From assembly GCA_002269645.1 (NCBI GenBank), contig NIVC01000180.1, positions 186,001 to 250,000 of the forward strand: a stretch of DNA of 64,000 bases, read 5' to 3'. Below the pieces are notes generated by a model. The model did no database searches, was not told the origin of the DNA, and saw nothing but the letters and a program-made list of their open reading frames with translations. Shown in pieces: positions 16,101 through 49,557 of this stretch. Position 1 is the stretch's first letter. Each line of letters opens with the position of its first letter. The DNA is from Macrostomum lignano. Taxonomy: Eukaryota. The translations under genes were made by a program, and so were the position numbers.

Positions 16101-19047
16101 GAGCAGGGAGAGAATCTGTCACTGTTCCCCCGAAACTTGTTCCCCATATTGGTGCAGTGCAGCGGACCACGCTGCATAGGGGGCCGCATTTATGCAGACA
16201 TAGCGAGTGGCCATACAATTTTCTCATCTTCCAACCCGAAAGCCGGCCCCGAGTGCGACAGGCCCGCTGTGGACCCTCAGGCGGATGATCGGTTGACATC
16301 GTAAATCTGTCCCGGGATAAATGGCTGGCGCTCAGCCCAGCCGCCCCCTACATCTCGATCCTCCAATTGTCAATTTGTGATACTGCGGCTGCCTCAAATT
16401 CAGTCCGGAGCGGAATCCCTGATCTGCGGATAATAAATATATTGTAGAGCTGCGCGGGCCACATATGGCTACTATTATCAAATTACTGAATACGTTTATG
16501 CGAGTATTATTACGCAATTACAAGTTAGGTTTGGTCAATGTTTGGGGTGCTGGTTAGTCAGTTTGCATGGCGAATTTAGACCCCCCTGACGCAAGCCACT
16601 GGTCCCTTGAGCGCGTACACACAGACGCATATAACGTACGCCCAAACTTTCCCATCGGTATGCGCATATTTTGTACAACTCCATATATTGGGAGTTGATC
16701 CTCATGAATTTGAATGAATCGTTCGACAAGCTCCTTCTACCGGCGAGAGCCAGGCGCCGGTTCGCATTTCCGCCAGTAGCATCAACCTGTTTTAAAATTG
16801 ACGAGTATTTGAGTTAATCTTCCACCTGGATTTCCTGCTTGAATCTCTGGACCCAGCATCCTAAATCATCATAAGCTTACAATGGAGGCACCAGCATTGT
16901 GTTTTTACCCATTGACGAGATTTATGGGGCGCAGTTATCGATCATCTCTGCCATTCGCGTAATGACCGTCTCAGGGACAGCAGCAAACTCTGTCTTCATT
17001 GTATTGACCAACCGATGCATCGGATAGCAGTTTTAGCTCGAAAAAAGATGGGAAAACTTCCTGACGAAATTTCGCGATAAATGATTTCGGAAATGACCCA
17101 CTTTCTGACCACAGAACGCAATGAGGAAATCAATGATTATTGGTTTGGCCTGAATGTTATTGAATAATTGAGAAAAAATGGTGCGCCTCGACCTCCGCAA
17201 CGAAGAATCAGTCACTGACAGTTCTACCCGGCGAGTTCTGCTGAGTGCTGAGTCACTGGGTATTATCCTTGCTTAAACTCGGACTCATGCAGCCAGACGA
17301 ATCCAAACCCAATCCAAAGCGAAAGAGAGAAGACAGCTGTATATCTGACTCTGCAGCGCCAACGGCAAGGCCACAATTTAGCCTGGGCTGCTCCACGAGA
17401 CTGCTTTCAGAGGAAAACAGATTGCTAGAGAGTGAAAGCGAAGGAAAGGAAAAAGATGCCCCACCCTGCAGTTTCTGGCGCATGGAAAACTGAAAATTGA
17501 GTTTTGCCTTCATCCCCTTCATCTGGGTAGCTCTGTGATCACAGCAGCGGAAGCCGCAGCTGCCCCCCAGACCTCTCCAGCGCCCCATCTTCGTGCACAG
17601 AGGGCAGCTTGCTCTCCAAGACATTTTCCTGAGATTTGGGGACTGCAAAGTCTCCGCAAGCATGTGTTTACAGGAAAATGTTCCGCTTGCCCGCAGCTGT
17701 AGGCCAGGTCAGGGGCACCCATGCCTGCGAGTCTTTCGGATTGAATTGTTCGTAGCAAAGTGTTTAGGAGTGTCATTTAACCATAATCGGATCCTCTGGC
17801 TCACTATGCATGGTTGATATTTCTATCAGCATTTATCAAGCTCGAAACTTTTCCAGGCTTGAAAGGCAGTCACTTGCTGATGGACTGGGCTTGACTTGAC
17901 AATGCCTGTAACGATATGAACTTTAGAGCCTGTGCAACCCCATCAGTTCCCCCAAGTTCCTTGTCTTTGTTACTGTAAAAAAATCACAGCTATTCAAGTA
18001 CTCTGGATATGAGCAACTGCAACTCAAATTCCATTGCAGTACGAGCCGAATGTGTACGAGCCGAACCCCTACATCGATTTCACCAACTACATCAAGAGTC
18101 CCGAGTGGATCACCGATGGCCAGGACGACTTTCGAATCCGGCCGTCGGAGCGGCGACGCCAGATCCGCTCCCGGATGGAGTGCAAGAACATCACCTTCAA
18201 GGGCCCGGACGGCCGCTCGCACAGTCAAGTTTTCCAGCGCTTGGTGTTTAAAATACGCATTCATAGAAACCCGGATTTCTACTTGTCCATTCTGGTGCTT
18301 CCCTGCATCCTCATGTCCTGTCTTACCTGGGTCATTTTCTGGCTGCCACCCGAGTCGCCAGCAAAGATGCTACTCGGAATGAACATCTTCGTGGCCTTCT
18401 TTATCCTCATGATTCTGCTGGCCAAGACCACCCCCAGTGCAGTGGGCACTTTTCCTAAGATCGGCTACTTCTATGGGCTCAACATGGTGATGATCACGCT
18501 GAGCACCTTTCTAGCTGCCATTGTGCTGAACCTGTACATGCGAGCAGACAGAAGGGGCCGCATGAGTCCCGTGCTGCGGCTGCTCATCCTCGAGGGCCTC
18601 GGCCGGCTGTTCCTCGTCCGTCAAGCGGTTCCATTGAAGCCGGCCACTCGGAAGTTGTTGTCCGAGCGGCTGCCAACGTCCTCAGCTGCTTCTCCGGTTT
18701 CGACGGCCGCCGCAGCCGCTCGCAAGGCCCGCCGGCACCGGCTGGAAGCCCCGCCGGGCGAGGCCGAGCGCGACTCGCCGTTGCTCCCGTGTGGCTGTGT
18801 CGAGCGAGAGGTGCGGGAGATCCGGCAGTTTCTCAAGGCGCACGTCGGCCGGCTGAAGGAGCGGGACAAGCGCAACCAGGCCTGCATGGAGTGGCGCACC
18901 CTGGCCATCGTGCTGGACCGCCTGTTCTTCACTGCCTACGTGCTGTGCATCGTCTCCTCTGTGGTCGTCCTCATACCGAGGTCGCACCAGGCAATTACGA
19001 ACAGCGCAGTGACAAACGAAGCAGACTGTCTAGCGGTGTCGCGGTGA
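13139..19047 (+). CDS. Nicotinic acetylcholine receptor-like Cys-loop subunit, non-alpha, predicted anion-selective (ACC-type), ~546 aa
   Basis: Exons 13139-13771 and 18040-19047 (phase 0; GTAAGT donor, TTGCAG acceptor). Signal peptide, WTPDIRL, Cys-loop CPVEIEYFPFDTQTC, GSWTYD, four TM helices, M1-M2 linker PPESPAK, M4 LDRLFF. Confidence 0.92.
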
Positions 19048-27097: not shown

Positions 27098-30000
27098 TCA
27101 GAGACCTCTCACCTGCTGTCCCATGGATGACGCAGCGTCAGCTTCTCTATCGACGTCGCGCCCCACCGAAGACTCTTCGGGCACCCCCGACATGGAAATC
27201 GAGCCGGCCCCGCGACCGCTGACGGTCGGCATTCGAAATGAGCCGCCGGCACCGCCGCCTGCGTAGCCTCTGAAGCAGCTGCTGCCGCATTCGCTGCCGG
27301 TGCGAGCAACGTCGTCGTAGAGAATGCGACAGTCGGTCTGCATGCAGTACAAGCACTGCTGCTGCTGCTGCTGCTGCTGCTGCAGAAGCCGCTGATTCTG
27401 GGAGCCGGTGCTCATCTCGGCCACACCCAGGCCCTCTTGCCGGCGTTGCCTCTGGCCGGTGGAGCGCTGCTGCCCGTGCGCTGCCTCGGCCGCGTCCAGA
27501 TCCACCTGTACAGTGCTCACGCAGAGGCAGCTGCCCAGCCAACCCAGTGGCTTCCTCTGGTTTCGTCTGCGCGTTTCTGCAATTTCGGATAACTGCTCAA
27601 TGAAGGAACTTCATCAGTAAAACTTGTGCTACGTCTTTGAGGTTGTCGAAGGATCTTTCAGGCTGACGATTTCTAAGAAATGCACCAGACTCTGCCGACT
27701 CAAATTCCGGGGCAACGGTCAACAACGACAACGCTCAGACGGTCTTTAATGTCTAGAAATTTTACCACAATTTTAAGTGAGCACTATTCAGGAAAATTTG
27801 CAGAATAAGCTTGAGAAAACATTGGATGAATGGCAATTCTCCTCAGGGAAAATCGGCATAGATTGCTTGGAAAGACAAGCTGATCAAAGAGTCTGTGTTC
27901 AAGAATGCGCTGAACAAGTGAAGATTGAGATGATGGCAATCGAAGCTGATGTTGAAGACGCACTTTCAATTTGCCTCAGCTCTCAGCTTGTTAACTCGCT
28001 CGTTCCAGAAATTCTACTACTCGCCACCAGCACTCGCTTCCGGCCTCCCACGCCCCTCTTCAAGCCCCCCCCCCCCCAGCGCTCTGTTTCCTTGTCCCAG
28101 CGAGGTCGGAACCGCAGGCAGCCAGGCAAAATCTGCGGTCAGGAGAGCAGCAGTCAGGCTGCTGTCGCGTGGACCAGAAAACCAATTTAAAGTACACTGC
28201 GATAACTCCTCCCCTCATTTCGGCGTATAGCCAATTTTGCGTCTCCAGAAGGCACTCAAACAAGGAAAACGGAAATTCGATTTGTTCAGCCAACTCATGG
28301 CGCTGGGAGGCAGAGAAATTTGTTTGGCTGAATGCGGAAATGCGGGAATGAAGATTAGCATTCCGCTAAAGCAGGGGTGGGCCAGATACAGAACCTTGGT
28401 TACCTGGCGCATGACTGCGGGCCAGAGGAGGGAACAGAGGATAAAAAAGAGGCGAGAGAATAAAGAAGAGAGACGAAATAGAGGAGAAGATATTAGAAGA
28501 GAAGAGAAGAGATTAGAAGAGAAGAGAAGAGAAGAGAAGAGATTAGAAGAGAAGAGAAGAGAAGAGAAGAGATTAGAAGAGAAGAGATTAGAAGAGAAGA
28601 GATTAGAAGAGAAGAGAAGAGAAGAGAAGAGAAGAGAAGAGAAGAGAAGAGAAGAGAAGAGAAGAGATTAGAAGAGAAGAGATTAGAAGAGAAGAGATTA
28701 GAAGAGAAGAGAAGAGAAGAGAAGAGAAGAGAAGAGAAGAGAAGAGAAGAGAAGAGATTAGAAGAGAAGAGAAGAGAAGAGAAGAGAAGAGAAGAGAAGA
28801 GAAGAGAAGAGAAGAGAAGAGAAGAGAAGAGAAGAGAAGAGAAGAGAAGAGAAGAGAAGAGAAGAGAAGAGAAGAGAAGAGGAGAGAAGAGAAGAGGAGA
28901 GAAGAGAAGAGAAGAGAAGAGAAGAGAAGAGAAGAGAAGAGAAGAGAAGAGAAGAGAAGAGAAGAGAAGAGAAGAGAAGAGAAGAGAAGAGAAGAGAAGA
29001 GAAGAGAAGAGAAGAGAAGAGGAGAGGAGAAAGAGGAGAGAGGAGAGGAAGGAGATTAGAGAAGAGGAGAGGGGATGAGAGAAGAGAGAGGAGAGGAGAG
29101 CTGAGAAGACACAAACACCGAGCGAGCCAAATTGCTATTGTGAAGTCTCAAAGGACCCGAGGGCCGGATAGAGAGGCTTTGTGGGCGGCATGTGGCCCGC
29201 CGGCCGGTTTGCCGACCCCTGCGCTAAAGTGTCCGGTCTTGAACAGTAGGTGAGCAGCAGTCTGCAGTTCGTGTCTGGGTTTTTACTTTACAATCATTGC
29301 CAACAAATAAATTTGAATGGTAAAACTACCGCAGTTGAAGTAATCAACTCACCCACGTAGTGCCTTGCCAGGATGCAGCGCACGCAGAAGCCCAGATTGA
29401 GCAGCAACGATGCTGACATGACTGCGAGCACCCCAATTATGTAGTCTGTGCGGGCAAACTTTGCCACTGGAATTTTGACGAAATGGAAGGCAATTAGTGA
29501 GCTAATCGGCTAGTGCAGAAAATACTGTGGGATTTCCTACAGTTCGGGTGCCGGTCAAAATCGTCCTGCGTTGCAGCGAGGTCTGCTGGGAACCGCCTGA
29601 CGTCCGGCTTCCAGACGCCCAAGTCGGCTGCGGCGGGCGCGCTGGTCGGTGGCGACTCTGCGTTGGCGGAGAACGTGTCGCGCATTCATTAGGTTTTCTC
29701 TTTAAGTTTATGGCAAAACTATAATCTATTATATGTATAAAAGACTCAGTATCTCGCACTATATACAGCAGAACGGTCTTGACAACCTCTGCCAGCCGCA
29801 AATTTAGTGGCGGCACCGAGTCGCAGCTCGAGATACTCACCTGCAGCAGCAGCCGCGCCACGCCTGCCTGTAGGCATTGGCTGCGTCGGCGCGAAGGTGG
29901 TCTTCATGACGTAGGCAGTCAGGTCCACCGTGGCGCTGACCGCTCCACGGAACTTGCAGCTCCAGGCGCCGGCCAGCCGCGACAGTCGCGTGTCCACCGT

Positions 30001-31672: not shown

Positions 31673-34293
31673 TGTATCTCCCAGTTTAATGAAATGGCGC
31701 ACCTGGTGCAATCTCCCAGTCCAATGAAATGGAGCACCTGGTGCAATCTCCCAGTCAAATGAAATGGCGCACCTGGTGCTTACATGTGTGTCCCAGTCCA
31801 ATGAAATGATGCACCTGGTGCAATCTCCCAGTCCAATGAAATGATGCACCTGGTGCAATCTCCCAGTCCAATGAAATGGAGCACCTGGTGCAATCTCCCA
31901 GTCCAATGAAATGGCGCACCTGGTGCAATCTCCCAGTCCAATGAAATGGCGCACCTGGTGCAATCTCCCAGTCCAATGAAATGGCGCACCTGGTGCAATC
32001 TCCCAGTCCAATGAAATGGCGCACCTGGTGCAATCTCCCAGTCCAATGAAATGGCGCACCTGGTGCAATCTCCCAGTCCAATGAAATGGCGCACCTGGTG
32101 CAATCTCCCAGTCCAATGAAATGGCGCACCTGGTGCAATCTCCCAGTCCAATGAAATGGCGCACCTGGTGCAATCTCCCAGTCCAATGAAATGGCGCACC
32201 TGGTGCAATCTCCCAGTCCAATGAAATGGCGCACCTGGTGCAATCTCCCAGTCCAATGAAATGGCGCACCTGGTGCTTACATGTGTGTCCCAGTCCAATA
32301 ACCTGGCGCACCTGGTGCAATCTCTCAGTACAATGAAATGGCGCACCTGGTGCTTACATGTGTGTCCCAGTCCAATGAAATGGCGCACCTGTTGCTATCT
32401 ACCAGTCCAATGAAATGGCGCACCTGGTGCTTACATGTGTGTCCCAGTCCAATGAAATGGCGTACCTGTTGCTATGTCCCAGTCCAATAACCTGGCGCAC
32501 CTGGTGCAATCTCTCAGTACAATGAAATGGCGCACCTGGTGCTTACATGTGTGTCCCAGTCCAATAACCTGGCGCACCTGGTGCAATCTCTCAGTACAAT
32601 GAAATGGCGCACCTGGTGCTTACATGTGTGTCCCAGTCCAATGAAATGGCGCACCTGTTGCTATCTACCAGTCCAATGAAATGGCGCACCTGGTGCTTAC
32701 ATGTGTGTCCCAGTCCAATGAAATGGCGTACCTGTTGCTATGTCCCAGTCCAATAACCTGGCGCACCTGGTGCAATCTCTCAGTACAATGAAATGGCGCA
32801 CCTGGTGCTTATATGTGTGTCCCAGTCCAATGAAATGATGCACCTGGTGCAATCTCCCAGTCCAATAACATGGCGCACCTGGTCCAATCTCCCAGTCCAA
32901 TGAAATGGCGCACCTGGTGCAATCTCCCAGTCCAATGAAATGGCGCACCTGGTGCTTACATGTGTGTCCCAGTCCAATAACCTGGCGCACCTGGTGCAAT
33001 CTCTCAGTACAATGAAATGGCGCACCTGGTGCTTACATGTGTGTCCCAGTCCAATGAAATGGCGCACCTGTTGCTATCTACCAGTCCAATGAAATGGCGC
33101 ACCTGGTGCTTACATGTGTGTCCCAGTCCAATGAAATGGCGTACCTGTTGCTATGTCCCAGTCCAATAACCTGGCGCACCTGGTGCAATCTCTCAGTACA
33201 ATGAAATGGCGCACCTGGTGCTTACATGTGTGTCCCAGTCCAATAACCTGGCGCACCTGGTGCAATCTCTCAGTACAATGAAATGGCGCACCTGGTGCTT
33301 ACATGTGTGTCCCAGTCCAATGAAATGGCGCACCTGTTGCTATCTACCAGTCCAATGAAATGGCGCACCTGGTGCTTACATGTGTGTCCCAGTCCAATGA
33401 AATGGCGTACCTGTTGCTATGTCCCAGTCCAATAACCTGGCGCACCTGGTGCAATCTCTCAGTACAATGAAATGGCGCACCTGGTGCTTATATGTGTGTC
33501 CCAGTCCAATGAAATGATGCACCTGGTGCAATCTCCCAGTCCAATAACATGGCGCACCTGGTCCAATCTCCCAGTCCAATGAAATGGCGCACCTGGTGCA
33601 ATCTCCCAGTCCAATGAAATGGCGCACCTGGTGCTTACATGTGTGTCCCAGTCCAATAACCTGGCGCACCTGGTGCAATCTCTCAGTACAATGAAATGGC
33701 GCACCTGGTGCTTACATGTGTGTCCCAGTCCAATGAAATGGCGCACCTGTTGCTATCTACCAGTCCAATGAAATGGCGCACCTGGTGCTTACATGTGTGT
33801 CCCAGTCCAATGAAATGGCGTACCTGTTGCTATGTCCCAGTCCAATAACCTGGCGCACCTGGTGCAATCTCTCAGTACAATGAAATGGCGCACCTGGTGC
33901 TTACATGTGTGTCCCAGTCCAATGAAATGATGCACCTGGTGCAATCTCCCAGTCCAATAACATGGCGCACCTGGTCCAATCTCCCAGTCCAATGAAATGG
34001 CGCACCTGCATGGTCCAATCTCCCAGTCCAATGAAATGATGCACCTGGTGCAATCTCCCAGTCCAATGAAATGGTGCACCTGGTGCTTACATGTGTGTCC
34101 CAGTCCAATGAAATGGAGCACCTGTTGCTATGTCCCAGTCCAATGAAATGACGCACCTGCATGGTGCAATCTCCCAGTCCAATGAAATGGCGCACCTGCA
34201 TGGTCCAATCTCCCAGTCCAATGAAATGGCGCACCTGTTGCTATGTCCCAGTCAAATGAAATGACGCACCTGGTCCAATCTCCCAGTCCAATG
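31673..34293. repeat. 35-bp satellite (CAGTCCAATGAAATGGCGCACCTGGTGCAATCTCC) with length variants and a 679-bp higher-order repeat
   Basis: Period of 35 seen at 31901 and 31936. Identical repeat-derived ORFs lie 679 bp apart (32697/33376 and 32780/33459). Confidence 0.95.
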
Positions 34294-35279
34294 AGGCCCT
34301 TGAAACCAAATGGGCCACCTCAAATGAAATTGCCCACTACTGAAAACGACCAAATGAAGAATCCTGGCAACGCCCCCTGAAGCGAGTTGGATGCGCGCAG
34401 CTGTCTTATCAATGGCAACACTTACCTGGACCCAGCAGACAGGCTAGCAGCAGAGACAGAGCCAGCAACCTGACCATACTTGCGGTGGTCGGCAAACAGA
34501 TTGCGCAATCAACTTTGCGATTATTCGGCTTAGACCTTGGAAACTTGGAGACAAAGTTTAATACTGACCCTGAGCAGGCTCAGTGCGCTGGTCAACCCGG
34601 CGGAACACGCAGTGCTCAACTCGCAGTTCATTTGCTTGCTTCATATATCAGACAGCACAGAATGCCTGAGCTGTGCTTAATTTATTCTCTACTCGCATTG
34701 TTAGCGTACGTTGCGTCTCAGCTTTCTATTGGTCCATAGCGTCTTCTATAGATAAGCTAAAGTTATACCACTCCGTTGGAGACGCTTGCATTGCTACTTT
34801 AAGTAAGTGAAACAAGAAAAAACTAAAATAATTAAATTAAAAAAACTTTTCAGCGCACATATTATTCCAAAATTATGCTGCTTACGTTTATGCACTTCTT
34901 TAAATAAAAACTTCACGACAGCCAAGCAAGATTTGATTCTCAGAACATAAAACCCGGCGTAAAACTTCACGCCAACACTAGTACGTGATACTCGATTAAA
35001 ATGTTGATCTGAAAAAGCAACTTTTAGGAATTCTGGCAACGTAGAATATACTAGCCTACTTGAAGTAGTAAGGTGACAGCCTGCAACAATTGTAACAGCT
35101 GCGGTGATCACAGAACATCGCTTTTTTAAATTTGTTTGAATCGACTGGTAAAATCTTGAGTAGCTATATTCAATGTTTCTCGTACATTCAAAAATAGGCA
35201 GAGCGTTGAGGTTTCTTGATGAATGAATTTTTATGAACGAGTAAAAATAGCTCCCTTGAGATCAAGGCTCTCACGCAGC

Positions 35280-36816
35280 TCAGTTCTCAGCCGCGTCCGC
35301 AGCCTCAATATCAGCCCGAGCCTTCGGTAGCAACTTCTCCAAGCGCTTGGCTACCGCGGCAAACTCGAAGGTGTCCTCGAACGTCTCTTTGCCGGGATTG
35401 TACACGTTTCGAATGGGCAGACCGTCCAGTCTCTTCTTGAGCTTGTGACACCTGTCCAGGTAAGCATCGAAGTTGTCAACAAAGTATCGGGCAGCGGACA
35501 AGTGCAGGGCCGGCGGCAGCGAGCGCTGCTCCAGCTGCTGGCAGACGGCGATTCGCAGAGTCTCGTAGGCGATTTGGTCGTTGTAGTGTTGATTGCTTTG
35601 CTCGCATTCTCGCATCGGTGCCGGCTCGTGCTTCAATGGCTGGTCATCAAGTCGAAATTGCATGTCGTGGATTATGTTCTCCAGGCGGTAGCTTGAATCC
35701 CAAGTGCATTCTCCCCAGGTGTTCTGAATAGGATCAAGGAATTTTTATTGGCTTGTATCAGAAAAAGCCGTATATTTTTGCAATAACTGTAGGTACATTG
35801 TAGGTACAACGCTACAATCATCCCAAAAAATGAAGTCAAAGAGATAACTAAGCTCGACAAGAGACAGGAGTTCAAGCTCAACTTTTGCCCCTGTAAGACA
35901 TGGCATCCACCGGTCTACGAAACGAAATATATAAGCAGAGGCGCCTTAGGGCAAGCATATCAAAACACCAAATACGAGCGTTTCAGAGTTGCAAATCCTG
36001 CGTACGCCAAGGGAGTCGTAGTCTAGTTGGTTAGGGCGTCGGACTCACGACTTGAAGGTCGAGGGTTCGATTCTGGACCCCACTCGGAACAATTTGTGTC
36101 CTTGAGCGAGACGCTTAACTCTGCATTGCTTCAGTTCACCCAGCTGTAAAATGGGCTCCAGTTCCAGAATTAGCTGGGGTAATTGAGGGCGTGTGTGTGT
36201 GGCGACCCCCCAGTCCTTGGAATTGCTGCGGCTGAGCTCAGTTGCAACTACTCGTACCTATTAGGATACCTATTAAGAAAAAATCCTATATACCAAAAAT
36301 GATCAGTGGGCTTTCAAAGCTCACCAGAATGCTCATGCACACGCAGCCTCTCTCATAGAAGTTGGGATGGAACCGAACCCTGTCGCCGTGGCTGGCTGTG
36401 CGGAAAGCCACGTAGGGCGGTCGCTGCGGATAGTCTGGCGGCGCGCGGACTGAGAAGTGAAAAAATCCGCCAGCGTAGGGAGTGCCGTCGCCACCTCGAA
36501 GCAGCAGCTCCGCGCGCACTGCGCAGTCCTCGTCGGGAAACACTTCCGCCAGAGGCTGCGGCTGATGGCAAAGACGGCGAAGATCGTCGGTGAAGCGCTT
36601 CAGACACTGCCGTGATGGCGCAGGCTCGGAATCGCGGCTTGGGTGGTCTGGGTCCCATTGCTCGGGCCTTTTGTAGGCATCCCAGTTGCCCATAGGCATA
36701 GGCATTAGCATAGGCATAGGCATGGGAATGGGTATGGGCATGGGCTCCCCAGACATGGGGAGGAATGGCATTGGAAAAGACTGTGGTGTGGATGTGGGGT
36801 CATGGAATGGGAACAT
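35280..36816 (-). CDS. UBE2Z: Ubiquitin-conjugating enzyme E2 Z-like (USE1), ~311 aa
   Basis: Exons 36816-36325 and 35723-35280 (phase 0). QCLKRF, GTPYAGGFF, PPDYPQRPP, RFHPNFYERGCVCMSILNTW (catalytic Cys kept), HEP...YNDQIAYETLRIAVC matches the UBE2Z C-terminal extension. Confidence 0.85.
36011..36278 (+). mobile_element. tRNA-derived SINE with a CORE/Meta-like central domain, antisense in the UBE2Z intron
   Basis: Head with A-box (TAGTCTAGTTGG) and B-box (GGTTCGATTC). Central TGTGTCCTTGAGCGAGACGCTTAAC...TCAGTTCACCCAGCTGTAAAATGGG. Short TACCTATTA repeats at the tail. Confidence 0.75.
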
Positions 36817-39282
36817 TTTTGTTGTTTTCAAAGGTTTGCAAAATTGTGTCAAGTATTAAATAGTCAGCATAAACAGGATAATGTTTCATTATACAGTAAA
36901 TTCCAAGACTCAAAAGTATTTCGAACATTTCATCAACTACACAATGTCAACCACAGGCATAGCTATAGCAAAAATTATATGTAAGCAACAAAGATGGCAA
37001 AAAATCTAAGTATATCTTAAACAAATTATTGAAATGTTTAATTAGTTGACTGACAAAAACAAATGGTATGGGCTATTACTACAATTTTTTACTTATTAAT
37101 ATTAAAAATTACTATGGGTAACTTTAGTATTTAGTATCCTAGTTACATAGGTAACTTTCAAGTCAAACAATTGAAAATATAAGCACCCTAAAGCTAAAAG
37201 GCCAAAGCAATATATTAAAGTAAGAAAATATATTTATAGTTACTAAGAATAAATAATAAGGTAAATCATGAAACAGATTATAAAACAATGTGTCCAATGT
37301 GTATATTAAGTAGTCTCAGTAATTAAAAAATCAAAACTATACTTAAACTTGGAATCTTTAAGCGTTGCACAAGGTAAAATGTCATTTATTAAATATCTAA
37401 AAATTAAATAGTTAAAATTAAATTTAACGACTCAATGAGCTGGTCATGGACCAGCTGCAGAAGCGAAGTGGTCAAAGCCAAAAGGATATAAAATTCTATG
37501 GTTGATATGCTTCTAAAGTTTCTAAAAGAATGGTCAACTGGTAGTAAATACTAACCGTCGACTACTTTAAAAACTTTTTTGGGCAAAATAGTATCTGTAT
37601 ATCAATCATACAGCTCACAGCTTGCCTTGTTCTATTTCTCGCAAACTTGCAAGTACAAAAGCTCTAAAAGCTTTTCTTAGGTCAGTTATTTTTTTAGACT
37701 CCTGAAAGCGAAAATTTTCGTGTGTAAAATATATTATATTTTTCAAATATTATTCTTAATTAAAACTTGTTTATTAAAAAATTAAATGCAGTATTTAGAA
37801 AAAAACTTTAAAAGACAAAAAATATTGTTAATCTATGCTAACACCGAAAATTTTATCTATGCCTCGTGCCTTTGTCGATTAGTTTCTGCCTCATGCGATC
37901 TATAGTTGCTACGCCAACGCTATGTAACACAATAGATCAATGAATCAACACACCAAACATTCTTACTTTGTATTATCATCTGTGTGCATGCGTGCGACAC
38001 TTCACAAAGCTAAGCCTAAAGAAAGGGCCGATTAAATCCAACAGTGTAACAAAACAGATCCTTAAACCAAAGGCCTAAACAACAGCAAGGCAAGATAATC
38101 AAGATTAGGCTTAAACTTAGTTTGCAGTGATCAGTGGGTCCCGTCTAGTCCAGTCCAGTAACTATACTATTATAATAATGTAATATTTTAATTACTTTAA
38201 ATGAATAGTATGTAATTTATAAGCCTTTTTAATAGTGTTGAGACTCCATAGAAATTTTGAAAGATTTTTTCTATTTCAGTTAATACGGGCCTAATGATAA
38301 ACCTTATTTGATTTGCCTGGGGCTAGGCCTAGCCTCCTAAGGCTAAGCTAAGGCTAGGTATAAAGACACTTGCTTTTAATTAATCTTGTCAAATAATAGA
38401 AAAATTAATATTAATAAAACTTTGTAGGCCCTTATCTTGTATCTTAACTTGAAGTTAAATTTCAACATTTTTTTATTATTTTAGTGATGTATTACATAAT
38501 ACATTTTACTAGGCTCTAGCCTCTAGGCCCTATTATTACTAATGTTAGTATTAGACTGTGTCTGTAAGCATTTGCATTAGGCCTAGGCCTATTATTGTGT
38601 TGTAGGTCTATAGGGCTACTTTTCTAATTCCTATTATTGAATATCCTATATTGTCTAAAAGATAGGCCTATAAAAAACAAATAAATAAATATATTACATT
38701 TGTCCTCTTTACCCTTTTAACTTTAAAAGTGTAAAAGAAAAATGAGGTTTATGATCATTTAAATGGCAAAAGGTAGCATCATTCCACAAGAGGGTCCTAT
38801 CATGTTTTTTGAACTTTAAGCACTTGTAATTTTTTAACCATGTCATAATAGATAAAACAAAACTGCAAAAAGCAATCTATGTCAAACTTTTAGCTCTATA
38901 TTATTCAAATAGCTAGGCCTACTTATGAATTCTAAAACAACTGAATATATAGCAAAGCATAAAATTTGCTAGGCCTATCATTAGATCAGTAGAGCATAAA
39001 GTCTGCCATATACAAATATATTAAATATTTGAAAAGCATGCTTTTTAAAAAAAACAAAATAAAAGAAGTGTTGTGTAAAAAGTAAAAAAAGCCTTATAAA
39101 AAATAAAAGAAGCATTATATAAAAAATAAATATCATGTAAAATATAAAAAAACCTTATGTCAAAAAGATTATCATTTCAAACCTAAAAAAGCATCATACA
39201 AACTAAAAAATATAATGTTGGAAATAAAAAGCCTTATATAAGCTTGCTTTGACTTTTAGGCATGCTTGGGTACAACTTAGGG

Positions 39283-39411
39283 ATTCACCTGGCCATTTCT
39301 ATTGGCAACACACATGTAAATTGCTATTGGACGGAATAGTAATCACGTGACTACTCTTAGCCAATAGCAATTTACATGTGTATGTTCCCAATAGAATCAA
39401 CCGAGTGATTT
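39283..39411. repeat. Imperfect palindrome (~110-130 bp) centred on CACGTG; MITE-like or regulatory
   Basis: Arms ACACATGTAAATTGCTATTGG and CCAATAGCAATTTACATGTGT are exact reverse complements, with weaker outer arms. Confidence 0.75.
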
Positions 39412-40609
39412 TCAAGGTTGCGCATATATGCTTTTAGGGGAAAGTTATTAAGATGTCAAGGCTCATGGCAAATAACAAATGTAAATAATTATGCAAATAT
39501 TTTTGAGATATCAAGGCTTTAGGGTGAAGGTTAGGTTTAGGTTAGGTTTGGGTTATGGGTTAGGGTTAGAAGGATTTCAAGGTTGATAAGAGATTTTTTT
39601 AGATTTTAAGATATTTTAGAATTTAGATAAATAAGAAAATCAATATGCTTCTAAATATATAAATATCTTAAGAAAAGTCATACCAAAATAATAATTATTC
39701 AAAAATAGATATGTTGACATTTATGAGATAAAAGTGTATATTGATTTGCATATTGTATCAACTATATTAGTTAATGATAACTATTTAGCTAGTTAACTAT
39801 TTTAGTTAATAAATTACTCAAGATACTCAAGTAAAGAGATTCCTAACTTGTATAAATAAAATATACAAATGTACTAAACTGTTATTCTAATTAAGATTAC
39901 AATTCTAGTATACACTAATAGGTTAATTAAATTCTAGTTAGATTGATTATATTCTCAAAAAATGTCATAGGACTAAACTATAGCAATATAGGCTTAACTT
40001 GCATTTAGGTTATTCTAAGATTAATCTTTAGCTTATATAGTAATTTAAAAATTTTAACATACTAAGCATTTTAACATACTAAGCATTGAAATACTATTAA
40101 CAATTAAGGTAACAAGAATCTAAGGAATAAGTAAGGTTTGTTATGGTTGGCTCATGGCTTAATTAGAAAATTGCCTAATGGCAAAAAGGAAAGTTGCTCA
40201 GATAAAATGTCACAAAAGAAGAAAGATCTAGGCCTAGCCTGATTTTTGTCACAAGCCTAAATAATTTTAAAATTTTATAACTTTTTGCAGGCCTATAGTA
40301 TTTCTATTCAATTTTATACTTTTCAATATACAAATTTGAGAGAGAATATAGGTAAAATTTTAACTTTAATTTAAATAATCCTGCTGTCATACGTAGTGAA
40401 TAGTCTTGAAACTTTACTTTCAATGGCATCTCATTAGGGGATATATAGGAAGCAAAATTTATGGCTGGTAGATTTTCTGCAACTGTTCAAGTCCTTAAAA
40501 GAAGAGGCACAATCTTTAGCTTGTTTTCAATTTTTAATTTTTCAGCTGACTAAGCATCACTGCTTGGACCTTTTTTCTGAGTTCCAACAATTTTAACTGA
40601 GTTGGTAGC

Positions 40610-43600
40610 ATGGATCTACCATACTGCGAATTGTGTAGTGAATATTTCTACACACCCATTGACTATAATGCCCACCTTGTGTCCAATGAACACTTGCAAA
40701 AGCTGCTTAGCTTTCCTGTTGGCCAGTCAGCTTCAAATCCTATGCCAGTAGGCTCTAATCAGGAAGATATAGGAGAACTTGAGCTAGTCCAGTCTGATTT
40801 TATTTATGTGTCACAGCACACACCTCAGTTGGCACAGATCTACAAAGTCTATCAAAACCATATCAGACAAATGATACCATTTGGCATGAGCTACATACTG
40901 CTCCTTGATGCTGTTCCGCCAAGCATGTGGCAGGGCATGATCTCAGCATTGAACGAGTTCTCTGTGTCATTTCCACTGTTTGTTCAAAGCGGCTCGTCTG
41001 GTTCTCCGCCTGCTGACAAGCAGCTAATGGACTTTGTATTGGTTGTTGACATCGATCCGTCTACCACAGCCAAGCAGTTGGCTGCTTGCATTGGTACTAG
41101 AGAGACCGATCTTGCACTGATACCCGGCGATTCTGGCTCCGACACCACTGGTTTTCTGCGCATCAGCCACTCCAAACGGCAGGTAGTGCTGGATAGAATT
41201 CGTTCGGCTCGCGTGCCACCTCGTCAGCGTCAGATTGATGCGTTTGAACTGTGGGGACCTCGCGCTTCTTCCTATAGTGGGGCGCGTTCGCCCACTTCAC
41301 CCCCGTTGCAGTCTTCACTTGCCCCATCGCCGAAGCTTAATAAGGATGTGCCTGGACTGCTCGCATCTTTGTCGTCTAGGACAATGAAGTTGGCAGCATC
41401 GTCTACTGCTACTACATCCTCATCTGGCTTGCCACCTAAGTCTGACAGCTATCGCCCTAGCTCTCCCAGCCAAGGTGGCAGGATACCATCTACATCCCTA
41501 GGTAGCAGCGGTCGCGGCCGCAGCAGCAGCAGCAGGCATCGAGCAGACGAGAGCAGAAGCCATCGCGACAGGTCCAGGTCCAAACACGGTTCCGGATCGC
41601 GGCTCCGGTCTAGATCGCGTTCTCGAGAGCGCAGATGCAGCCGAAGCCGCAGTCGCCAACGAGGTCATAGTCGAAGTAGCAAAGACCCCCAGCGAGATCA
41701 GGATCGCAATCGCGACCGAGATACTCGCAGTGAACGCGGCCCCGACCGTAATTCTGAGCAGGGCAGCGGCTATAAGCGTCGTGGTAGGCGAAGTTCGTTC
41801 TCCATGCACGAAGCTGCTGAGGAGCAAGAGGATGACTACGATGAGACGCCGTCTTGCTATCTGGAGCGCACTTGGTCAATCAAATTTGGCGGTATGCCAT
41901 ACCTTCGAATCTCAGGATTCGATCCAGAGGTAGATACAGTCGACTTGGTTGACGCCGTCTGCAGCCGAATTGACGGTATAGAAAGCATTTACGCATTTAC
42001 TCACCCTAAGGGTTTGAGAAAGAGTGTTATTTGCAACTTAAGCGAACAGACACCTATGCCCTCGGTTAATCAAGTCAAGGACAAGATTGGTGACCTGTGC
42101 AGTAACGAGCATCTGTTTGCACAGGACTATACAGAAGAGGCATTTCATCAAATTAAGTTTAATCTTCCGCATACATTTTTCTTTGTCCCCGTAACTAAGA
42201 CGCGAGCCTTTGAGCCCATGTTTCTATTAATTTGGAATATACCAGGCAATGTGCATCCGAATCACATTCTGTACAACATGCGTAGGTCTATGCCCAGCGC
42301 ACGCAGTTTTAACTGTCCGCGACTATTTCGGAAGTCATATAAGCAAGGCCGATTCAAGAGCAACGCAATTCAATTGAACTGTGGCTACGCCGTTGCTAGG
42401 TTCAACAGCTCCGAAGACTGCACCGTGATGATGCAAAGACTCGAAGAAGCTGCCGAGGAGGAGTTGCAGGCTGTATTTTCAAGCGGTAAAGTAAAGTTCT
42501 CGTTCGTATGCATGCAAGAGACTTGCTTGATTCCGCCATTTTCCTTTCCCTGTCACAACTTTCTTCATTGGGACCTCGATTCCGACTGGGATAGCATGTG
42601 TCCACAAGACTCTTTGCCTGACAGGCCTTATGTACCGTTTGTGTGCAACTGCCACACCGACTCCATGCCGATAGCACCACACGCTTCGGCTCTAGATGTC
42701 GTCGCCAAACATATTGTTGAACAGCTCGCGGTCGATGGTCCTTCTGTTGTGTGCCAGAAGTTGACCGAACTGCTTAAGCTCGAGGACAGCTGTCCAAAGA
42801 AATTTGCATGCGTCGAAGACCGGCCCGCTTCGGATCGCGTGCCCCCTATCGAGCTGGGCAGTGTTCAGCTCGGATCGGCCAGTAGTTATTGGTGTTTGCT
42901 TTACGGGCCCGACATATACTACACTGCAAGAGGCTTTCCATTGAGTATGGACTCATTCGAAATCGAAGAGATCGTGAAGCGAACTTGCAAAGCTTACTGC
43001 ATCTACGTGCACATTTATCCTCAGCCGGTGCCTCAAGTGCTGACAAAACAAGCCGTGTTTCGCTGCTCACCCGCTGCGACGAGTTCGTCCATGTTCTCAG
43101 CTACGCGATCGCTTCAAATAAAGCTTAACGAAGAGATGGAGCGCCTCAATATACAGCTGCCGGACAACATTTTTGTGAGCGAATGGAGCTATCGATCTTG
43201 GGACAAGTTCAAGCACTTGCGCCCGTTTATGTTACCATTCTGCCCCGTGCCGAACGGCTACAGGAAGCCGCACTTCATCCTAGTGTGGAACATCAACTCC
43301 GAGTTGGGCAAGCACGTCTTGGTGCGAAACTTCCTTAAGAAGTACCCGCAAGTGCGCAGCGTCTTTTCGCCGCATCTCCAACCAGCTCAGGTCTGCCGCA
43401 ACTGCGAGTTCTGCGTGCTGCGCTTCGACAACCCCGATGATTGCGTGCGCACCTATGCATCGATGCGAATCATGACAGAGCAAGAGCTGCAGGCTCTGTG
43501 CCCCAGGTCAGACATTCGCTTTATCCTGTGCCGCATGGAGGAGACCTGCTACATCCGACCGTTTCTATTTCCGTGCCACAATTTCTTCTTCTGGTACGGC

Positions 43601-43828
43601 CGTAACGATGAAGGTCAGACGAACAACGGCGACAGGCTGTTTGTTGAAAGTTGGTCCCGTCGGTTTGACTGCGTCTGCCACCCCTACTGCGAGGCCTTGA
43701 CCCCTGGCGGACCGCAGCTGCTTCGCTTTGCGCGAATGGTGCACACGGCCGTTGAAAAATCTACGTGCGAAGCTGTCAAGAACTGCCTGCTGATGTATAT
43801 CGAGGCCACGCAAGATGCGACCAAATGA
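40610..43828 (+). CDS. Intronless 1072-aa protein: N-terminal U1/matrin-type C2H2 zinc finger, RS-rich region and several divergent RRM-like domains in a duplicated module
   Basis: Long stop-free ORF. C-x2-C-x12-H-x5-H at the N-terminus; RSRSRSRER tract at ~41500-41790; internal repeat ETCLIPPFSFPCHNF / ETCYIRPFLFPCHNF 341 codons apart. RRM assignment is by eye. Confidence 0.82.
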   Translation: MDLPYCELCSEYFYTPIDYNAHLVSNEHLQKLLSFPVGQSASNPMPVGSNQEDIGELELVQSDFIYVSQHTPQLAQIYKVYQNHIRQMIPFGMSYILLLDAVPPSMWQGMISALNEFSVSFPLFVQSGSSGSPPADKQLMDFVLVVDIDPSTTAKQLAACIGTRETDLALIPGDSGSDTTGFLRISHSKRQVVLDRIRSARVPPRQRQIDAFELWGPRASSYSGARSPTSPPLQSSLAPSPKLNKDVPGLLASLSSRTMKLAASSTATTSSSGLPPKSDSYRPSSPSQGGRIPSTSLGSSGRGRSSSSRHRADESRSHRDRSRSKHGSGSRLRSRSRSRERRCSRSRSRQRGHSRSSKDPQRDQDRNRDRDTRSERGPDRNSEQGSGYKRRGRRSSFSMHEAAEEQEDDYDETPSCYLERTWSIKFGGMPYLRISGFDPEVDTVDLVDAVCSRIDGIESIYAFTHPKGLRKSVICNLSEQTPMPSVNQVKDKIGDLCSNEHLFAQDYTEEAFHQIKFNLPHTFFFVPVTKTRAFEPMFLLIWNIPGNVHPNHILYNMRRSMPSARSFNCPRLFRKSYKQGRFKSNAIQLNCGYAVARFNSSEDCTVMMQRLEEAAEEELQAVFSSGKVKFSFVCMQETCLIPPFSFPCHNFLHWDLDSDWDSMCPQDSLPDRPYVPFVCNCHTDSMPIAPHASALDVVAKHIVEQLAVDGPSVVCQKLTELLKLEDSCPKKFACVEDRPASDRVPPIELGSVQLGSASSYWCLLYGPDIYYTARGFPLSMDSFEIEEIVKRTCKAYCIYVHIYPQPVPQVLTKQAVFRCSPAATSSSMFSATRSLQIKLNEEMERLNIQLPDNIFVSEWSYRSWDKFKHLRPFMLPFCPVPNGYRKPHFILVWNINSELGKHVLVRNFLKKYPQVRSVFSPHLQPAQVCRNCEFCVLRFDNPDDCVRTYASMRIMTEQELQALCPRSDIRFILCRMEETCYIRPFLFPCHNFFFWYGRNDEGQTNNGDRLFVESWSRRFDCVCHPYCEALTPGGPQLLRFARMVHTAVEKSTCEAVKNCLLMYIEATQDATK

Positions 43829-45020: not shown

Positions 45021-45644
45021 GCTCACTTGCACCTGCTCGGGCAGGAAAATTCGCAGACCTCAACGAGTAGCCGGCAGCAGCCGCAGTCTTCAGCGGCGGC
45101 TGAAGAGAGCCGCGAGCTCACCCACGAGGACATGGTGTACATGAAGAAGTGCCGGGACGAGTCCATGGTCTATGGCCAGTTGCCGCTCACCGGCCTTTTC
45201 TCGGGCTTTGTGTGGTACCGCCACCGGGCCGGCTACTACAATCACCTGCCATTCGCCGCTGTCCTTGGCCGCTACTTCTTCGCCCTGAGCACCGGCATCG
45301 TGCTCGGCCTGGTCGCCTACGTGCCGCTCTGCCTGTCCCGGGTGACCCGAGTAGACATGGTTGACAGTGTGCTGCAGGACCGGATGCTCAAGCTGCGGTC
45401 TAACCAGCAGCTGGATGAGAATTCTCGACTTCGCGTGCCAGACATTGGGCCGAACGAGCCGTTTCGCGACCCCTATCTGAAGGCTTTGGGTTCCGAGGAA
45501 GGGTTCACAACCTACAAACAGAGGCGCGAGCTCTCCAGACAGCTGGCTCGGGAGAGGCCGAGTAACCAGCAGCAGGAGCAGCAAACTGCCCAGTTATTGC
45601 CTGATTCTAATGAGCACTCAGAAGCTTCGCTGGCTTGGCAGTAG
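45021..45644 (+). CDS. OCIA-domain protein (OCIAD/asrij-like); start or first exon unresolved
   Basis: EDMVYMKKCRDESMVYGQLPL...two hydrophobic segments...GLVAYVPLC resembles the OCIA domain pattern (ECxxES...LP; G..SY...C). The ORF-track start is TTG, so an upstream exon is likely. Confidence 0.68.
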   Translation, partial: AHLHLLGQENSQTSTSSRQQPQSSAAAEESRELTHEDMVYMKKCRDESMVYGQLPLTGLFSGFVWYRHRAGYYNHLPFAAVLGRYFFALSTGIVLGLVAYVPLCLSRVTRVDMVDSVLQDRMLKLRSNQQLDENSRLRVPDIGPNEPFRDPYLKALGSEEGFTTYKQRRELSRQLARERPSNQQQEQQTAQLLPDSNEHSEASLAWQ

Positions 45645-46848: not shown

Positions 46849-48548
46849 ATGCAGCAGTCGGACGAGGACCTCCAGGCTGAGGTTTACCGCTCCCCCCTGG
46901 TGGCTCGCTACGCCAGCCCCGAGATGGCGGCCAACTTTGGCGACCGCAAAAAATTCACCACCTGGCGCCGCCTGTGGCTGTGGCTGGCCGAGTCGCAGCA
47001 GCAGCTGGGTCTGGCCATCACTGACCGGCAGCTGGCCGAGATGCGCGCCAGCCTGGACCTGCTCGACCTGCGATTGGCTGCCGAGGAGGAGCGGAAACGG
47101 AAGCACGACGTCATGGGGCACGTGCACGCCTTTGCCGCCCAGTGTCCCGCGGCTGCCGCCGTCATCCACCTGGGCGCCACGTCCGCCTACGTTGGAGACA
47201 ACACCGATCTAATTTGCCTGCGCGATGCGCTGGACATCCTGCTACCCAGGTAGCTACCCAATAGCAACACTGGTAATCATGAGTCATGCTACTAAAAATA
47301 GCACACTGGTAATCATGAGTCATGCTACTAAAAATAGCACACTGGTAATTATGAGTCATCAGTTACTAACAATCAGTATAAGTCCTAATTTTTTATCCGA
47401 AATAAAGAAAGCAATTGTATCGTCATATATTCAGCTCTTCAGCTCACTACTCTTCCTCCGCTTTTCTCAACCACTAAAGGTCAAACTAAGTCTTCGTAGA
47501 TACGCTTTAAGCTCTGCTCAACTATCAATGTGCAACCAGTTACCAGTTTACGCTTAACTGTCTATTGCCTCAAATGTTCCTACTGTAAGTAGCATAAATC
47601 GCCGCTCCGCTGCCCCTGCCAGGCTCGCGGCTGCAATCGCCGCCCTGTCGCGATTCGCCGGCCAGCACCGCTCGCTGGCATGCCTGGGCTTCACGCACCT
47701 GCAGCCCGCCCAGCTCACCACTGTGGGCAAGCGGGCCTGTCTGTGGCTGGCCGACCTGCTGGCCGACCTGCGCAACCTCAGCCGCTGCCGGGCCGACCTG
47801 CGCTTCCGCGGCGTCAAAGGCACCACCGGCACCCAGGCCAGCTTCCTGCAGCTGTTCGAGGGCGACCACGATCGGGTGGAACAGCTGGACAAGCTGGTGA
47901 CGGCCAAGGCCGGCTTCCCCGCCGCCTACATCGTCACCGGGCAGACCTACAGCCGCAAGGTGGACTCTGAAGTCCTGCTGCAGCTGGCCGGCTTCGGCGC
48001 CACCGCGCACAAAATCGCCACCGACCTGCGCCTGCTGGCCTCCTGGAAGGAGATCGAGGAGCCGTTCGAGCGCGACCAGATCGGCTCCTCCGCCATGCCG
48101 TACAAGCGGAACCCCATGCGGCTGGAGCGGGTCTGCGGCCTGGCCCGCCACGTCATGGCTCTGGCGCAGGTGTCTGTCTGTCTTGTCTGTCTGTCTGCCT
48201 GCCTGTCTGTCTGTGTGTCTTTCTGTCGGTCTGTCTGTCTGCCTGTCTGTCTGCCTGTCTGTGTGTCTGTCTGCGACTCTGCGTGTGTCTGTCTGTCTGT
48301 CTGTCTTAGTGTCTGTCTGTCTGCTTGTCTGTCTGCCTGCCTGTGTGTCTGTCTGCGTGTGTCTGTTTGTCTGTGTGTTTGTGTGTCTGTCTGTCTGTCT
48401 GTCTTAGTGTCTGTCTGTCTGCCTGTCTGTCTGCCTGTCTGTGTGTCTGTCTGCGTGTGTCTGTTTGTCTGTGTGTTTGTGTGTCTGTCTGTCTGTCTGT
48501 CCGTCTGTCTGTCTCAGTCTGTCTGTCTGTCTCAGTCTGTCTGTCTCA

Positions 48549-48582
<34 letters not shown>

Positions 48583-48661
48583 GTGTCTGTCTGTGTGTCT
48601 GTCTGTCTGTCTGTCCGTCTGTCTGTCTCAGTCTGTCTGTCTGTCTCAGTCTGTCTGTCTT

Positions 48662-48722
<61 letters not shown>

Positions 48723-48743
48723 GTGTCTGCCTGTCTGTCTGCC

Positions 48744-48788
<45 letters not shown>

Positions 48789-49557
48789 TAGTGTCTGTCC
48801 GACTGTTAGCTGTCCCTCTGGTGTTTTTATTTTCTCTTCTCCTCCGAGACCCACTGCAATATTTCACAGCTCTGCCGCGCCCACCCGCTCAGGACGCGCT
48901 GAACACCCATTCGGTGCAGTGGATGGAGCGCACCCTGGACGACTCCAGCAACCGCCGCCTGAGCATCCCGGAGGCGTTCCTGGCCGCCGACATCGTTGCC
49001 AGCACCCTGGGCAGCGTATTCGACGGCCTGGTGGTCTACCCGATGGTCATCCAGCGCCATCTCAAGGAGGAGCTGCCCTTCATGGCCACCGAGAACATCC
49101 TGGCCGCCATGGTGAAGGCTGGCGGCAATCGCCAGGTGAGAGAGGCCAGACTGATGTCGAATTGAGCACTGAAATTGTCTGTCTGTCATGTCTGCCTGTC
49201 ATCTCTGTCTGTCACACTCCTTTCCTTGTTACTAAAGCCAAGTCCCACACAGACTGTCAGCCACCCCCGCCAACTCCGCCTCTCCAGGAATGCCACGAGG
49301 TGATCCGTCAGCTGAGCCAGCAGGCCGCAGCCCAGGTGAAGGAGCGCGGCCTTGACAACGACCTGATCGAGCGGATCCAGGCCTCGGATTACTTCGCCCC
49401 GATTCGAGACCGGCTGCCTGAGCTGCTGGACCCCGCCACCTTCGTGGGCCGGGCGCCTCAGCAGGTGGACCGCTTCCTAGCCGAGGAGGTGGCCCCGGCG
49501 CTGGCTCCGTTCACTGCCGCGCTGGAGAAACTGACTGCGGTGGTGCAGCGCGTGTGA
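46849..49557 (+). CDS. ADSL: Adenylosuccinate lyase (486 aa)
   Basis: Exons 46849-47249, 47623-48169, 48893-49135 and 49288-49557 (1461 nt). [43 protein letters not shown], signature [20 protein letters not shown]. Confidence 0.96.
47260..47360. repeat. 36-bp tandem repeat (~2.8 copies) in ADSL intron 1
   Basis: CTGGTAAT recurs at 47270, 47306 and 47342. Confidence 0.9.
48170..48800. repeat. Degenerate (CTGT)n microsatellite filling ADSL intron 2
   Basis: Direct reading; begins at the GT donor. Confidence 0.95.

Follow-up and report, generated by a model that had tools for sequence, protein, structure and literature searches.

Several families of RNA-binding proteins are built around paired or repeated RNA-recognition motifs (RRMs), a β-α-β-β-α-β fold usually marked by two short ribonucleoprotein (RNP) motifs, with the consensus [ILV]-[FY]-[ILV]-x-N-L for RNP2 and [RK]-G-[FY]-[GA]-[FY]-[ILV]-x-[FY] for RNP1. 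Tandem-RRM proteins such as Sxl, PABP, HuR/HuD, hnRNP A1, Pub1, raver1, PTB and IMP3 (RRM12) carry short-linked pairs of this fold. In the DBHS proteins (SFPQ/PSF, NONO and PSPC1) two RRMs are followed by a conserved extension of ~50–60 residues and by helices, and one deposited SFPQ structure is zinc-mediated (6OWJ, ‘Zn-mediated polymerization of human SFPQ’). MATR3, RBM20 and ZNF638 combine one or two RRMs with flanking matrin-type fingers, and classical SR proteins consist of N-terminal RRM(s) followed by a C-terminal arginine/serine-rich (RS) domain. The subject here is a gene of the flatworm Macrostomum lignano that recalls parts of these systems, and that lies in a 64,000-nucleotide stretch of assembly GCA_002269645.1 (contig NIVC01000180.1, positions 186,001–250,000 of the forward strand; hereafter the window). 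It consists of an uninterrupted open reading frame (ORF) of 1072 codons at 40610–43828 on the forward strand.

The slightly favoured interpretation of this ORF is that it is a functional gene, restricted to Macrostomum, for a large modular RNA-binding protein comprising a zinc finger, an RRM-like pair, an RS linker and two RRM-pair modules, each with a Cys/His tail pinned by zinc. The predicted layout is a finger, an RRM-like pair, a ~190-residue disordered linker (S/P-rich, then RS) and two successive copies of a module formed from fold A, fold B, the tail and a helical pair (Table 1).

A coding gene under purifying selection

No other ORF in the window comes near it in length, the runner-up at 480 amino acids (aa) being less than half as long, and an in-frame TGA lies 9 nt 5′ of its ATG. 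The preliminary description of this DNA, made from the sequence alone, had reported a 1072-aa intronless ORF at these positions; it is found there as stated, and in GCA_002269645.1 it is annotated as a coding sequence (CDS) of one exon and 3219 nt. The matching entry, BOX15_Mlig033299g2, is an M. lignano gene annotated as ‘hypothetical protein’, and the cluster formed at 90% identity contains three near-identical 1072-aa sequences, the window’s own included. A literature search with the locus tags and accessions returned no paper mentioning them. Gene models in this assembly were derived from RNA-seq-guided transcripts and TransDecoder ORFs, with repeat-overlapping models removed (PMC5730564).

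A second copy of the locus, L001, is collinear with the window for more than 17 kb, with the same neighbours: a ubiquitin-conjugating (UBC) E2 gene, an OCIA-like ORF and adenylosuccinate lyase (ADSL). Comparison of the two ORFs gave 22 differing codons, 15 of them synonymous and seven non-synonymous, with no indel over 3219 nt and a ratio of non-synonymous to synonymous differences per site (pN/pS) of 0.13. The two modules account for nine synonymous differences and one non-synonymous, and five of the seven non-synonymous differences sit in the linker at aa 218–410. The 3.5 kb upstream are 96.2% identical with 69 gapped positions. This combination of low pN/pS, an ORF free of indels and flanks that carry them demonstrates a real protein-coding gene under purifying selection. 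As the near-identical copies are collinear over such a distance and share unrelated neighbours, they represent homeologous or duplicated chromosome blocks; duplicated blocks with ≥95% identity are known to make up 180 Mb of the assembly (PMC5730564).

A small family found so far in one genus

An exhaustive phmmer search of 1.84 billion cluster representatives with aa 411–1072 recovered the protein itself and four others, all of them M. lignano UniProt entries. This bears out the earlier view of the protein as lineage-specific, and the gene is, in the databases searched, restricted to one genus so far. The family thus comprises the gene described here and at least four paralogues modelled in UniProt (P0004–P0007; entries A0A1I8I8L7, A0A1I8JLK3, A0A1I8HYM5 and A0A1I8GGF0). 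Word-indexed searches retrieved less: the full-length query found the protein itself only, the RS tract having probably swamped the index, module 2 gave no match, and the module profile A1 (see below) found P0006 only. A 46-bit back-translated motif scan of metagenome contigs returned no matches, and the window holds no further copy of the family.

In P0004 (UniProt A0A1I8I8L7, 2098 aa) a retrotransposon gag/CCHC/protease-like N-terminus is fused to two consecutive family units. Unit 1 comprises a finger remnant, the N-terminal pair, an acidic linker and a module 2-like copy; in unit 2 an N-terminal-like region precedes a module 1-like copy. P0004 is probably a chimeric gene prediction, yet it shows that paralogues carry the N-terminal pair too. 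Two of the paralogue models overlap, in that the C-terminal part of P0004 matches most of P0005, one internal segment excepted.

An old duplication of an RRM-like module

The C-terminal region of the protein is occupied by two copies of a module of ~330 aa each. BLASTP of one half against the other gave E=7e-24 with 24% identity over 299 aa, far beyond chance, and at such divergence the alignment marks the internal duplication as both real and old. The two diverged copies and the 1023-nt spacing of their anchors, both claimed previously, were recovered: FPCHNF occurs at aa 646 (nt 42545) and again at aa 987 (nt 43568), a distance of exactly 1023 nt; CNCH lies at aa 679 in module 1 and CVCH at aa 1021 in module 2, and both modules contain a single WNI, ELQA, ETC and RF(N/D). 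The back-translated pattern P-F-x-F-P-C-H-N-[LF]-[LF]-x-W has two sites in the window, both expected, and none in 100 shuffles.

Six independent module copies were aligned (A1), and the AlphaFold2 model of module 1 based on this alignment predicts two β-α-β-β-α-β units, folds A and B. In a Foldseek search of the PDB this model gave 73 matches at E≤1e-3, of which the top 50 were all multi-RRM structures (E ~1e-5), including SFPQ/NONO/PSPC1, Sxl, raver1, Pub1, PABP, DND1, hnRNP A1, HuR/HuD, nucleolin and PTB. Structure prediction therefore agrees with the tandem RRM folds first proposed for the modules. The sequence profile of the module points in the same direction, as five of its eight weak PDB matches are canonical RRMs (hnRNP Q, SRSF2, PPIL4, TIAR and SRp46; E 0.3–0.5), aligned in RNP2-to-RNP1 register. 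At the level of predicted fold the protein belongs with RRM proteins.

Agreement with the RNP consensus is partial and confined to the B folds, which read L-L-I-W-N-I/C-G-Y-A-V-A-R-F in module 1 and I-L-V-W-N-I/C-E-F-C-V-L-R-F in module 2; the A folds and the N-terminal folds show no match to RNP2 or RNP1. In fold B of module 1 the motifs are the RNP2-like FLLIWNI and the RNP1-like (C)GYAVARF, and a ‘DC’ cysteine, Cys604, begins helix α-2. Beyond fold B come the tail and a C-terminal helical pair, whose pattern recurs in paralogues. The best structural matches of both models described here are tandem-RRM proteins, from which the M. lignano protein nevertheless differs in having no significant sequence similarity to them, in missing most RNP aromatics, and in its conserved Cys/His tail and helical pair.

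By eye, fold B also resembles RRM3 of Mei2 (LLIWNIPGN/NCGYAVARF against VMIKNIPNK/CNVGYAFINF). Assignment to the Mei2-type RRM (RRM_2, PF04059) was rejected, as hhalign against Mei2 RRM3 (PDB 7DUS) gave E=0.039 over 16 columns and Pfam gave no match. P0005 is named ‘RRM_2 domain-containing’ in UniProt, a name that may derive from another domain database, e.g. SMART. The Pfam RRM_1 model goes undetected on the M. lignano protein described here and reaches no better than E=0.28 on P0007.

The DBHS proteins are the top Foldseek matches of module 1 (E 1e-5, ~316 aligned columns) and share its order of RRM, RRM, extension and helices. Membership was rejected, since the Pfam NOPS model has no match in the protein, no sequence relationship was found and the resemblance is topological only, with TM-scores of ~0.2 and a root-mean-square deviation (rmsd) above 20 Å; moreover, the M. 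lignano protein has a short helical pair in place of a long coiled coil and carries its module twice per chain. A DBHS-like function is nevertheless conceivable. The RRM-like folds could be pseudo-RRMs that mediate protein–protein contacts only, in the manner of UHM domains or of dimerisation in DBHS proteins. The protein would then be a scaffold in which the tail and helical pair of each module drive oligomerisation, possibly with zinc bridging the subunits as reported for SFPQ, and would lack sequence-specific RNA binding. Such a scaffold would fit the lead of DBHS structures in the module 1 list, where ~300–330 aligned columns reach into the C-terminal helices, the zinc-mediated SFPQ polymerization of the top match 6OWJ, the lack of RNP aromatics in four of the six folds and the lack of a Pfam RRM match. 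However, DBHS structures rank first for the N-terminal pair as well, although that pair has neither tail nor helices, so that their ranking mainly reflects tandem-RRM geometry; the superpositions are poor (TM 0.19–0.26, rmsd >20 Å) without sequence similarity to DBHS or NOPS, and fold B retains the G-[YF] of RNP1 and the Asn of RNP2. A pure scaffold is accordingly considered rather unlikely, and the modules are preferentially read as RNA-binding.

The Cys/His tail

The tail starts one or two residues past strand β-4 of fold B. The six module copies share 24–38% identity, with 15 invariant columns. Those in or near fold B are two prolines, upstream of and early in the fold, the R-F that ends RNP1 and the ‘DC’ cysteine that opens helix α-2. 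The tail contributes the Cys of E-x-C, the F, P, H, N and W of F-x-F-P-x-H-N-x3-W, the C-x-C-H and a Pro eight residues further on. Cys and His make up six of the 15 invariant columns, compared with 14 of 143 ungapped columns (odds ratio 10, Fisher p=9e-4), and by this measure the tail selectively conserves Cys and His. The preliminary description had singled out PCH and CxCH as invariant; this stands for the His and the C-x-C-H, and fails for the ‘PCH’ Cys, which is Ala in P0007. The Asn after the His, the Trp and the ‘DC’ and ‘ETC’ cysteines, these last two listed there and left unstressed, prove to be invariant as well.

A profile of the tail alone found no relative in the PDB or Pfam, all matches being spurious (spondin-1, XRCC3, AMA-1) with E>0.01, in keeping with the suggestion that it is undescribed. 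The conservation of these residues suggests that the tail may bind metal. It is tentatively proposed, as a possibility with the balance still against it, that the ~55-aa tail E-x-C-x8-9-[C/A]-H-N-x3-W-x~25-35-C-x-C-H forms with the ‘DC’ Cys an undescribed zinc-binding subdomain, which would be structurally integrated with the preceding RRM, receive a ligand from it and have arisen and been duplicated within the Macrostomum lineage.

Alternatively, the conserved Cys and His may bind no metal and serve in buried packing or as redox or disulfide cysteines, with the tail forming a hydrophobic and aromatic extension (PPFxFPxHNLLxW) packed on the sheet of fold B, comparable to the C-terminal extensions of some RRMs. 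Pro, Phe and Trp are indeed as abundant as Cys and His in the most conserved stretch, one putative ligand is the ‘PCH’ Cys replaced in P0007, and no known zinc-finger model matches, nor does AlphaFold2 place the residues in a clustered site. The invariance of four Cys and two His across six copies so diverged is, on the other hand, typical of intracellular metal ligands, and structural disulfides are unlikely in a nuclear RS-domain protein. A tail free of metal is for these reasons thought improbable, and a zinc-held tail is retained in the working model below.

The N-terminal finger, fold pair and linker

At the N-terminus a C-x2-C-x12-H-x5-H finger was located at aa 6–28, as had been noted. 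Its assignment as matrin-type can be kept in a broader form: the spacing fits the U1-like/JAZ/matrin class, and Pfam support is marginal, zf-C2H2_jaz scoring 22.7 bits on the aa 1–217 fragment (cut-off 22.6) and 19.3 on the full protein, and zf-met 19.2 bits against a cut-off of 21.2. The finger is the sole part of the protein recognised by Pfam. Its best PDB matches, which are weak (E 0.05–0.6), are ZFa, Bud20 and Prp9/SF3a60, all dsRNA-binding or U1-like fingers. The likeness to JAZ/ZNF346, ZFa, Bud20 and Prp9/SF3a60 thus extends to spacing, a marginal Pfam score and the best structural matches; in contrast to them, the scores here lie at or below cut-offs, there is one finger where JAZ and ZFa have several, and the rest of the protein is unrelated. 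In P0004 the second Cys and both His of the finger are retained.

A second AlphaFold2 model, of aa 1–230 from a three-sequence alignment, had a mean predicted local distance difference test (pLDDT) score of 65.4 and a predicted TM-score (pTM) of 0.66. Across the finger pLDDT is below 40; aa 55–222 lie mostly at 72–85 and form two β-α-β-β-α-β units. In Foldseek nearly all top matches of this model were tandem RRMs aligned across both units (probability 0.9–0.99, E 1e-3 to 1e-2), and fold 2 of the pair is conserved in two segments of P0004. The N-terminal region therefore appears to be a tandem RRM-like pair in its own right, bringing the predicted number of RRM-like folds to six; the count of five in the preliminary description needs correction, its ‘fifth segment’ being one of two units (aa 59–126 and 137–217). 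Descent of the pair from a third copy of the module was also considered. The two share their fold, but hhalign (A3 against A1) gave E=0.11 over 18 columns with register at β-1 only, so common origin is not demonstrated.

Between the N-terminal pair and module 1 lies a low-complexity linker. Its first part, aa 218–299, is rich in S/P/T/G/A (66%), and it continues into an R/S/D/E-rich tract at aa ~300–400 (nt 41507–41809) with 31 R and 26 S. The RS tract of the earlier account is thereby confirmed, with 23 RS/SR dipeptides within aa 300–400. In P0004 an acidic low-complexity linker takes its place. Because the tract is internal, between RRM-like pairs, classification as a classical SR protein was rejected, and the protein is ‘SR-related’ at most.

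Proposed role

The same kinds of parts, namely a U1/matrin-like C2H2 finger, RRM folds and an RS region (the last in RBM20 and ZNF638), had led to a comparison with the architecture of MATR3, RBM20 and ZNF638. The analogy of parts holds. Membership does not: neither the exhaustive phmmer search nor the PDB search detected homology, and the domain order differs, as the M. lignano protein has a single finger, at the N-terminus, none at the C-terminus, and three RRM-like pairs, and its Cys/His tails have no counterpart in that group.

The combination of U1-like finger, RS tract and RRM folds would suit a nuclear, SR-related RNA-processing factor. The RS tract could target the protein to the nuclear SR-protein/splicing network in a phosphorylation-regulated manner, and the finger could contact structured or duplex RNA. 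The B-type RRMs, which keep the Asn at RNP2 position 5, an aromatic residue at RNP1 position 3 and the terminal Phe, would provide the likeliest contacts to single-stranded RNA, and the A-type folds and N-terminal pair, being without RNP aromatics, may serve as scaffolds or as pseudo-RRMs that bind proteins. The tail would most likely fold back onto fold B, pinned by one zinc ion with ligands drawn from the invariant set (the Cys of E-x-C, the His of P-x-H-N, the C-x-C-H and possibly the ‘DC’ Cys on α-2), and, thus held, might extend or gate the RNA-binding surface. RNA binding by the protein is probable.

Several observations weigh against this model. No Pfam RRM model is reported on the protein or on either module at E≤10. 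RNP2 position 2 and RNP1 position 5 are non-aromatic in this protein, so that RNA binding is not assured. The alignments behind the AlphaFold2 models are very shallow (six and three sequences), with mean pLDDT of 55.6 for module 1 and 65.4 for the N-terminal region; the Foldseek TM-scores are low (0.15–0.38), and the folds of module 2 are assigned solely by homology to module 1. The tail and finger fall below pLDDT 50, and the models give no support for a zinc site, to which the Ala of P0007 at the ‘PCH’ position may be added. Finally, the RS tract is not conserved in P0004, which limits the nuclear-splicing inference to this gene.

The scope of these proposals is narrow, covering one genus so far and a main fold, the RRM, that is very common. 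Should the tail prove to be a genuine metal site joined to an RRM, RNA-binding modules would gain a new type of RRM extension, and the protein would show a lineage building a large RNA-binding protein by repeated duplication of an RRM pair. No homologue of this small family could be detected in the databases searched, and its members are candidate lineage-specific RNA-processing factors in Macrostomum, which is a transgenic and RNAi-amenable model of regeneration and reproduction.

Absence of introns

M. lignano genes average ~5 introns (PMC5730564), and an intronless CDS of 3.2 kb is real but atypical for this species; alone, it is no evidence of retroposition. The retrogene origin raised in the preliminary description finds no further sign at the locus: there is no poly(A) remnant 3′ of the gene (no A-run of ≥7 until 45902), no target-site duplication (no flanking direct repeat of ≥11 nt) and, within 1.2 kb, neither AATAAA nor ATTAAA; no intron-bearing parent was identified, the genomic loci of the paralogues not having been retrievable. 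The lack of introns, the gag/CCHC/protease-like sequence fused to P0004 and the several near-identical copies in the assembly might suggest a retrogene, an ORF associated with a transposon or an artefact of annotation, with no host function of its own. Such a reading is very improbable given the pN/pS of 0.13 and lack of indels, the absence of poly(A), polyadenylation signal and flanking repeats, the apparently chimeric nature of the P0004 model, the removal of repeat-overlapping GenBank models by the annotators and the collinearity of the copies with UBC E2, OCIA-like and ADSL genes over >17 kb, which marks them as the duplicated blocks expected of the redundant DV1 assembly (PMC5730564).

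Features of the locus and its neighbourhood

Table 1. Positions of the gene, its predicted domains and neighbouring genes in the window
Feature	Position (nt)	Strand	Basis
Complete single-exon CDS, 1072 aa + stop	40610..43828	+	99% identity to BOX15_Mlig033299g2 (PAA51730.1)
Polypyrimidine tract + AG (TTTTTAATTTTTCAG), 65 nt upstream of ATG	40530..40544	+	Sequence read
Putative C2H2 zinc finger C-x2-C-x12-H-x5-H, aa 6–28	40625..40693	+	Spacing of the U1-like/JAZ (dsRNA-binding) class; marginal Pfam score
N-terminal RRM-like fold 1, aa 59–126, no RNP aromatics	40784..40987	+	AlphaFold2 pLDDT 72–83; Foldseek
N-terminal RRM-like fold 2, aa 137–217 (FVLVVDID ... TGFLRIS ... AFELW)	41018..41260	+	AlphaFold2 pLDDT ~61–85; Foldseek
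Low-complexity linker, aa 218–410	41261..41839	+	Sequence composition
Module 1 RRM-like fold A, aa 431–507 (YLRISGF ... KSVICNL)	41900..42130	+	AlphaFold2 pLDDT 53–72; Foldseek
Module 1 predicted RRM fold B, aa 538–635	42221..42514	+	AlphaFold2 pLDDT 73–89 over structured elements; Foldseek
Module 1 tail, aa 636–691: E-T-C639, P-P-F-x-F-P-C648-H649-N-F-L-x-W654, variable loop, C679-x-C681-H682	42515..42682	+	Invariant columns
Module 1 C-terminal helical pair (predicted), aa 692–726	42683..42787	+	AlphaFold2 helices 282–299, 301–316, pLDDT ~42–60
Module 2 RRM-like fold A, aa ~770–860 (YYTARGF ...)	42917..43189	+	Boundaries from homology to module 1
Module 2 predicted RRM fold B, aa 889–976 (FILVWNI ... 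(C)EFCVLRF ... ‘DC’ Cys945)	43274..43537	+	Homology
Module 2 tail, aa 977–1033: E-T-C980, P-F-x-F-P-C989-H990-N-F-F-x-W995, loop, C1021-x-C1023-H1024	43538..43708	+	Alignment
Module 2 C-terminal helical region (predicted), aa 1034–1072	43709..43825	+	Homology to module 1 helices, P0004, P0006
Ankyrin-repeat protein	4242–5333	-	
Animal haem peroxidase	9235–10317	+	
Cys-loop ligand-gated channel exons	13139–13789, 18034–19047	+	
Ubiquitin-conjugating E2 exon	36286–36852	-	
Adenylosuccinate lyase exons	47723–49557	+	

In the 5′ leader of the gene, the polypyrimidine-AG element TTTTTAATTTTTCAG could be a 3′ splice acceptor or a spliced-leader (SL) trans-splice acceptor; 38.8% of M. lignano genes are trans-spliced (PMC5730564). 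The paralogous locus tag in GenBank carries the suffix ‘g2’, used in that annotation for a gene inside a multi-gene transcriptional unit. Directly upstream of the gene, at 38000–40500, lies an AT-rich block (28% GC, compared with ~48% elsewhere) that is also the most indel-rich part of the alignment with L001.

The neighbouring genes are ordinary, unrelated animal genes. Downstream, a 205-aa ORF at 45027–45644 (+) matches the OCIA domain weakly, at E=2.4e-4 and short of the Pfam cut-off, and its counterpart in L001 is an annotated 199-aa gene with no Pfam match. A minisatellite at 31676–34294 is built from ~70 copies of a 35-nt unit, ATCTCCCAGTCCAATGAAATGGCGCACCTGGTGCA, with a higher-order period of 77 nt; the array in L001 is much shorter (about 2100–2957), and its length thus differs between the duplicated blocks. 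Two microsatellites, (AGAGA)n at 28469–29109 (~129 copies) and (TGTC)n at 48171–48799 (~156 copies), the latter inside the adenylosuccinate-lyase region and presumably intronic, account for the strong AT-skew spikes in the composition profile of the window.

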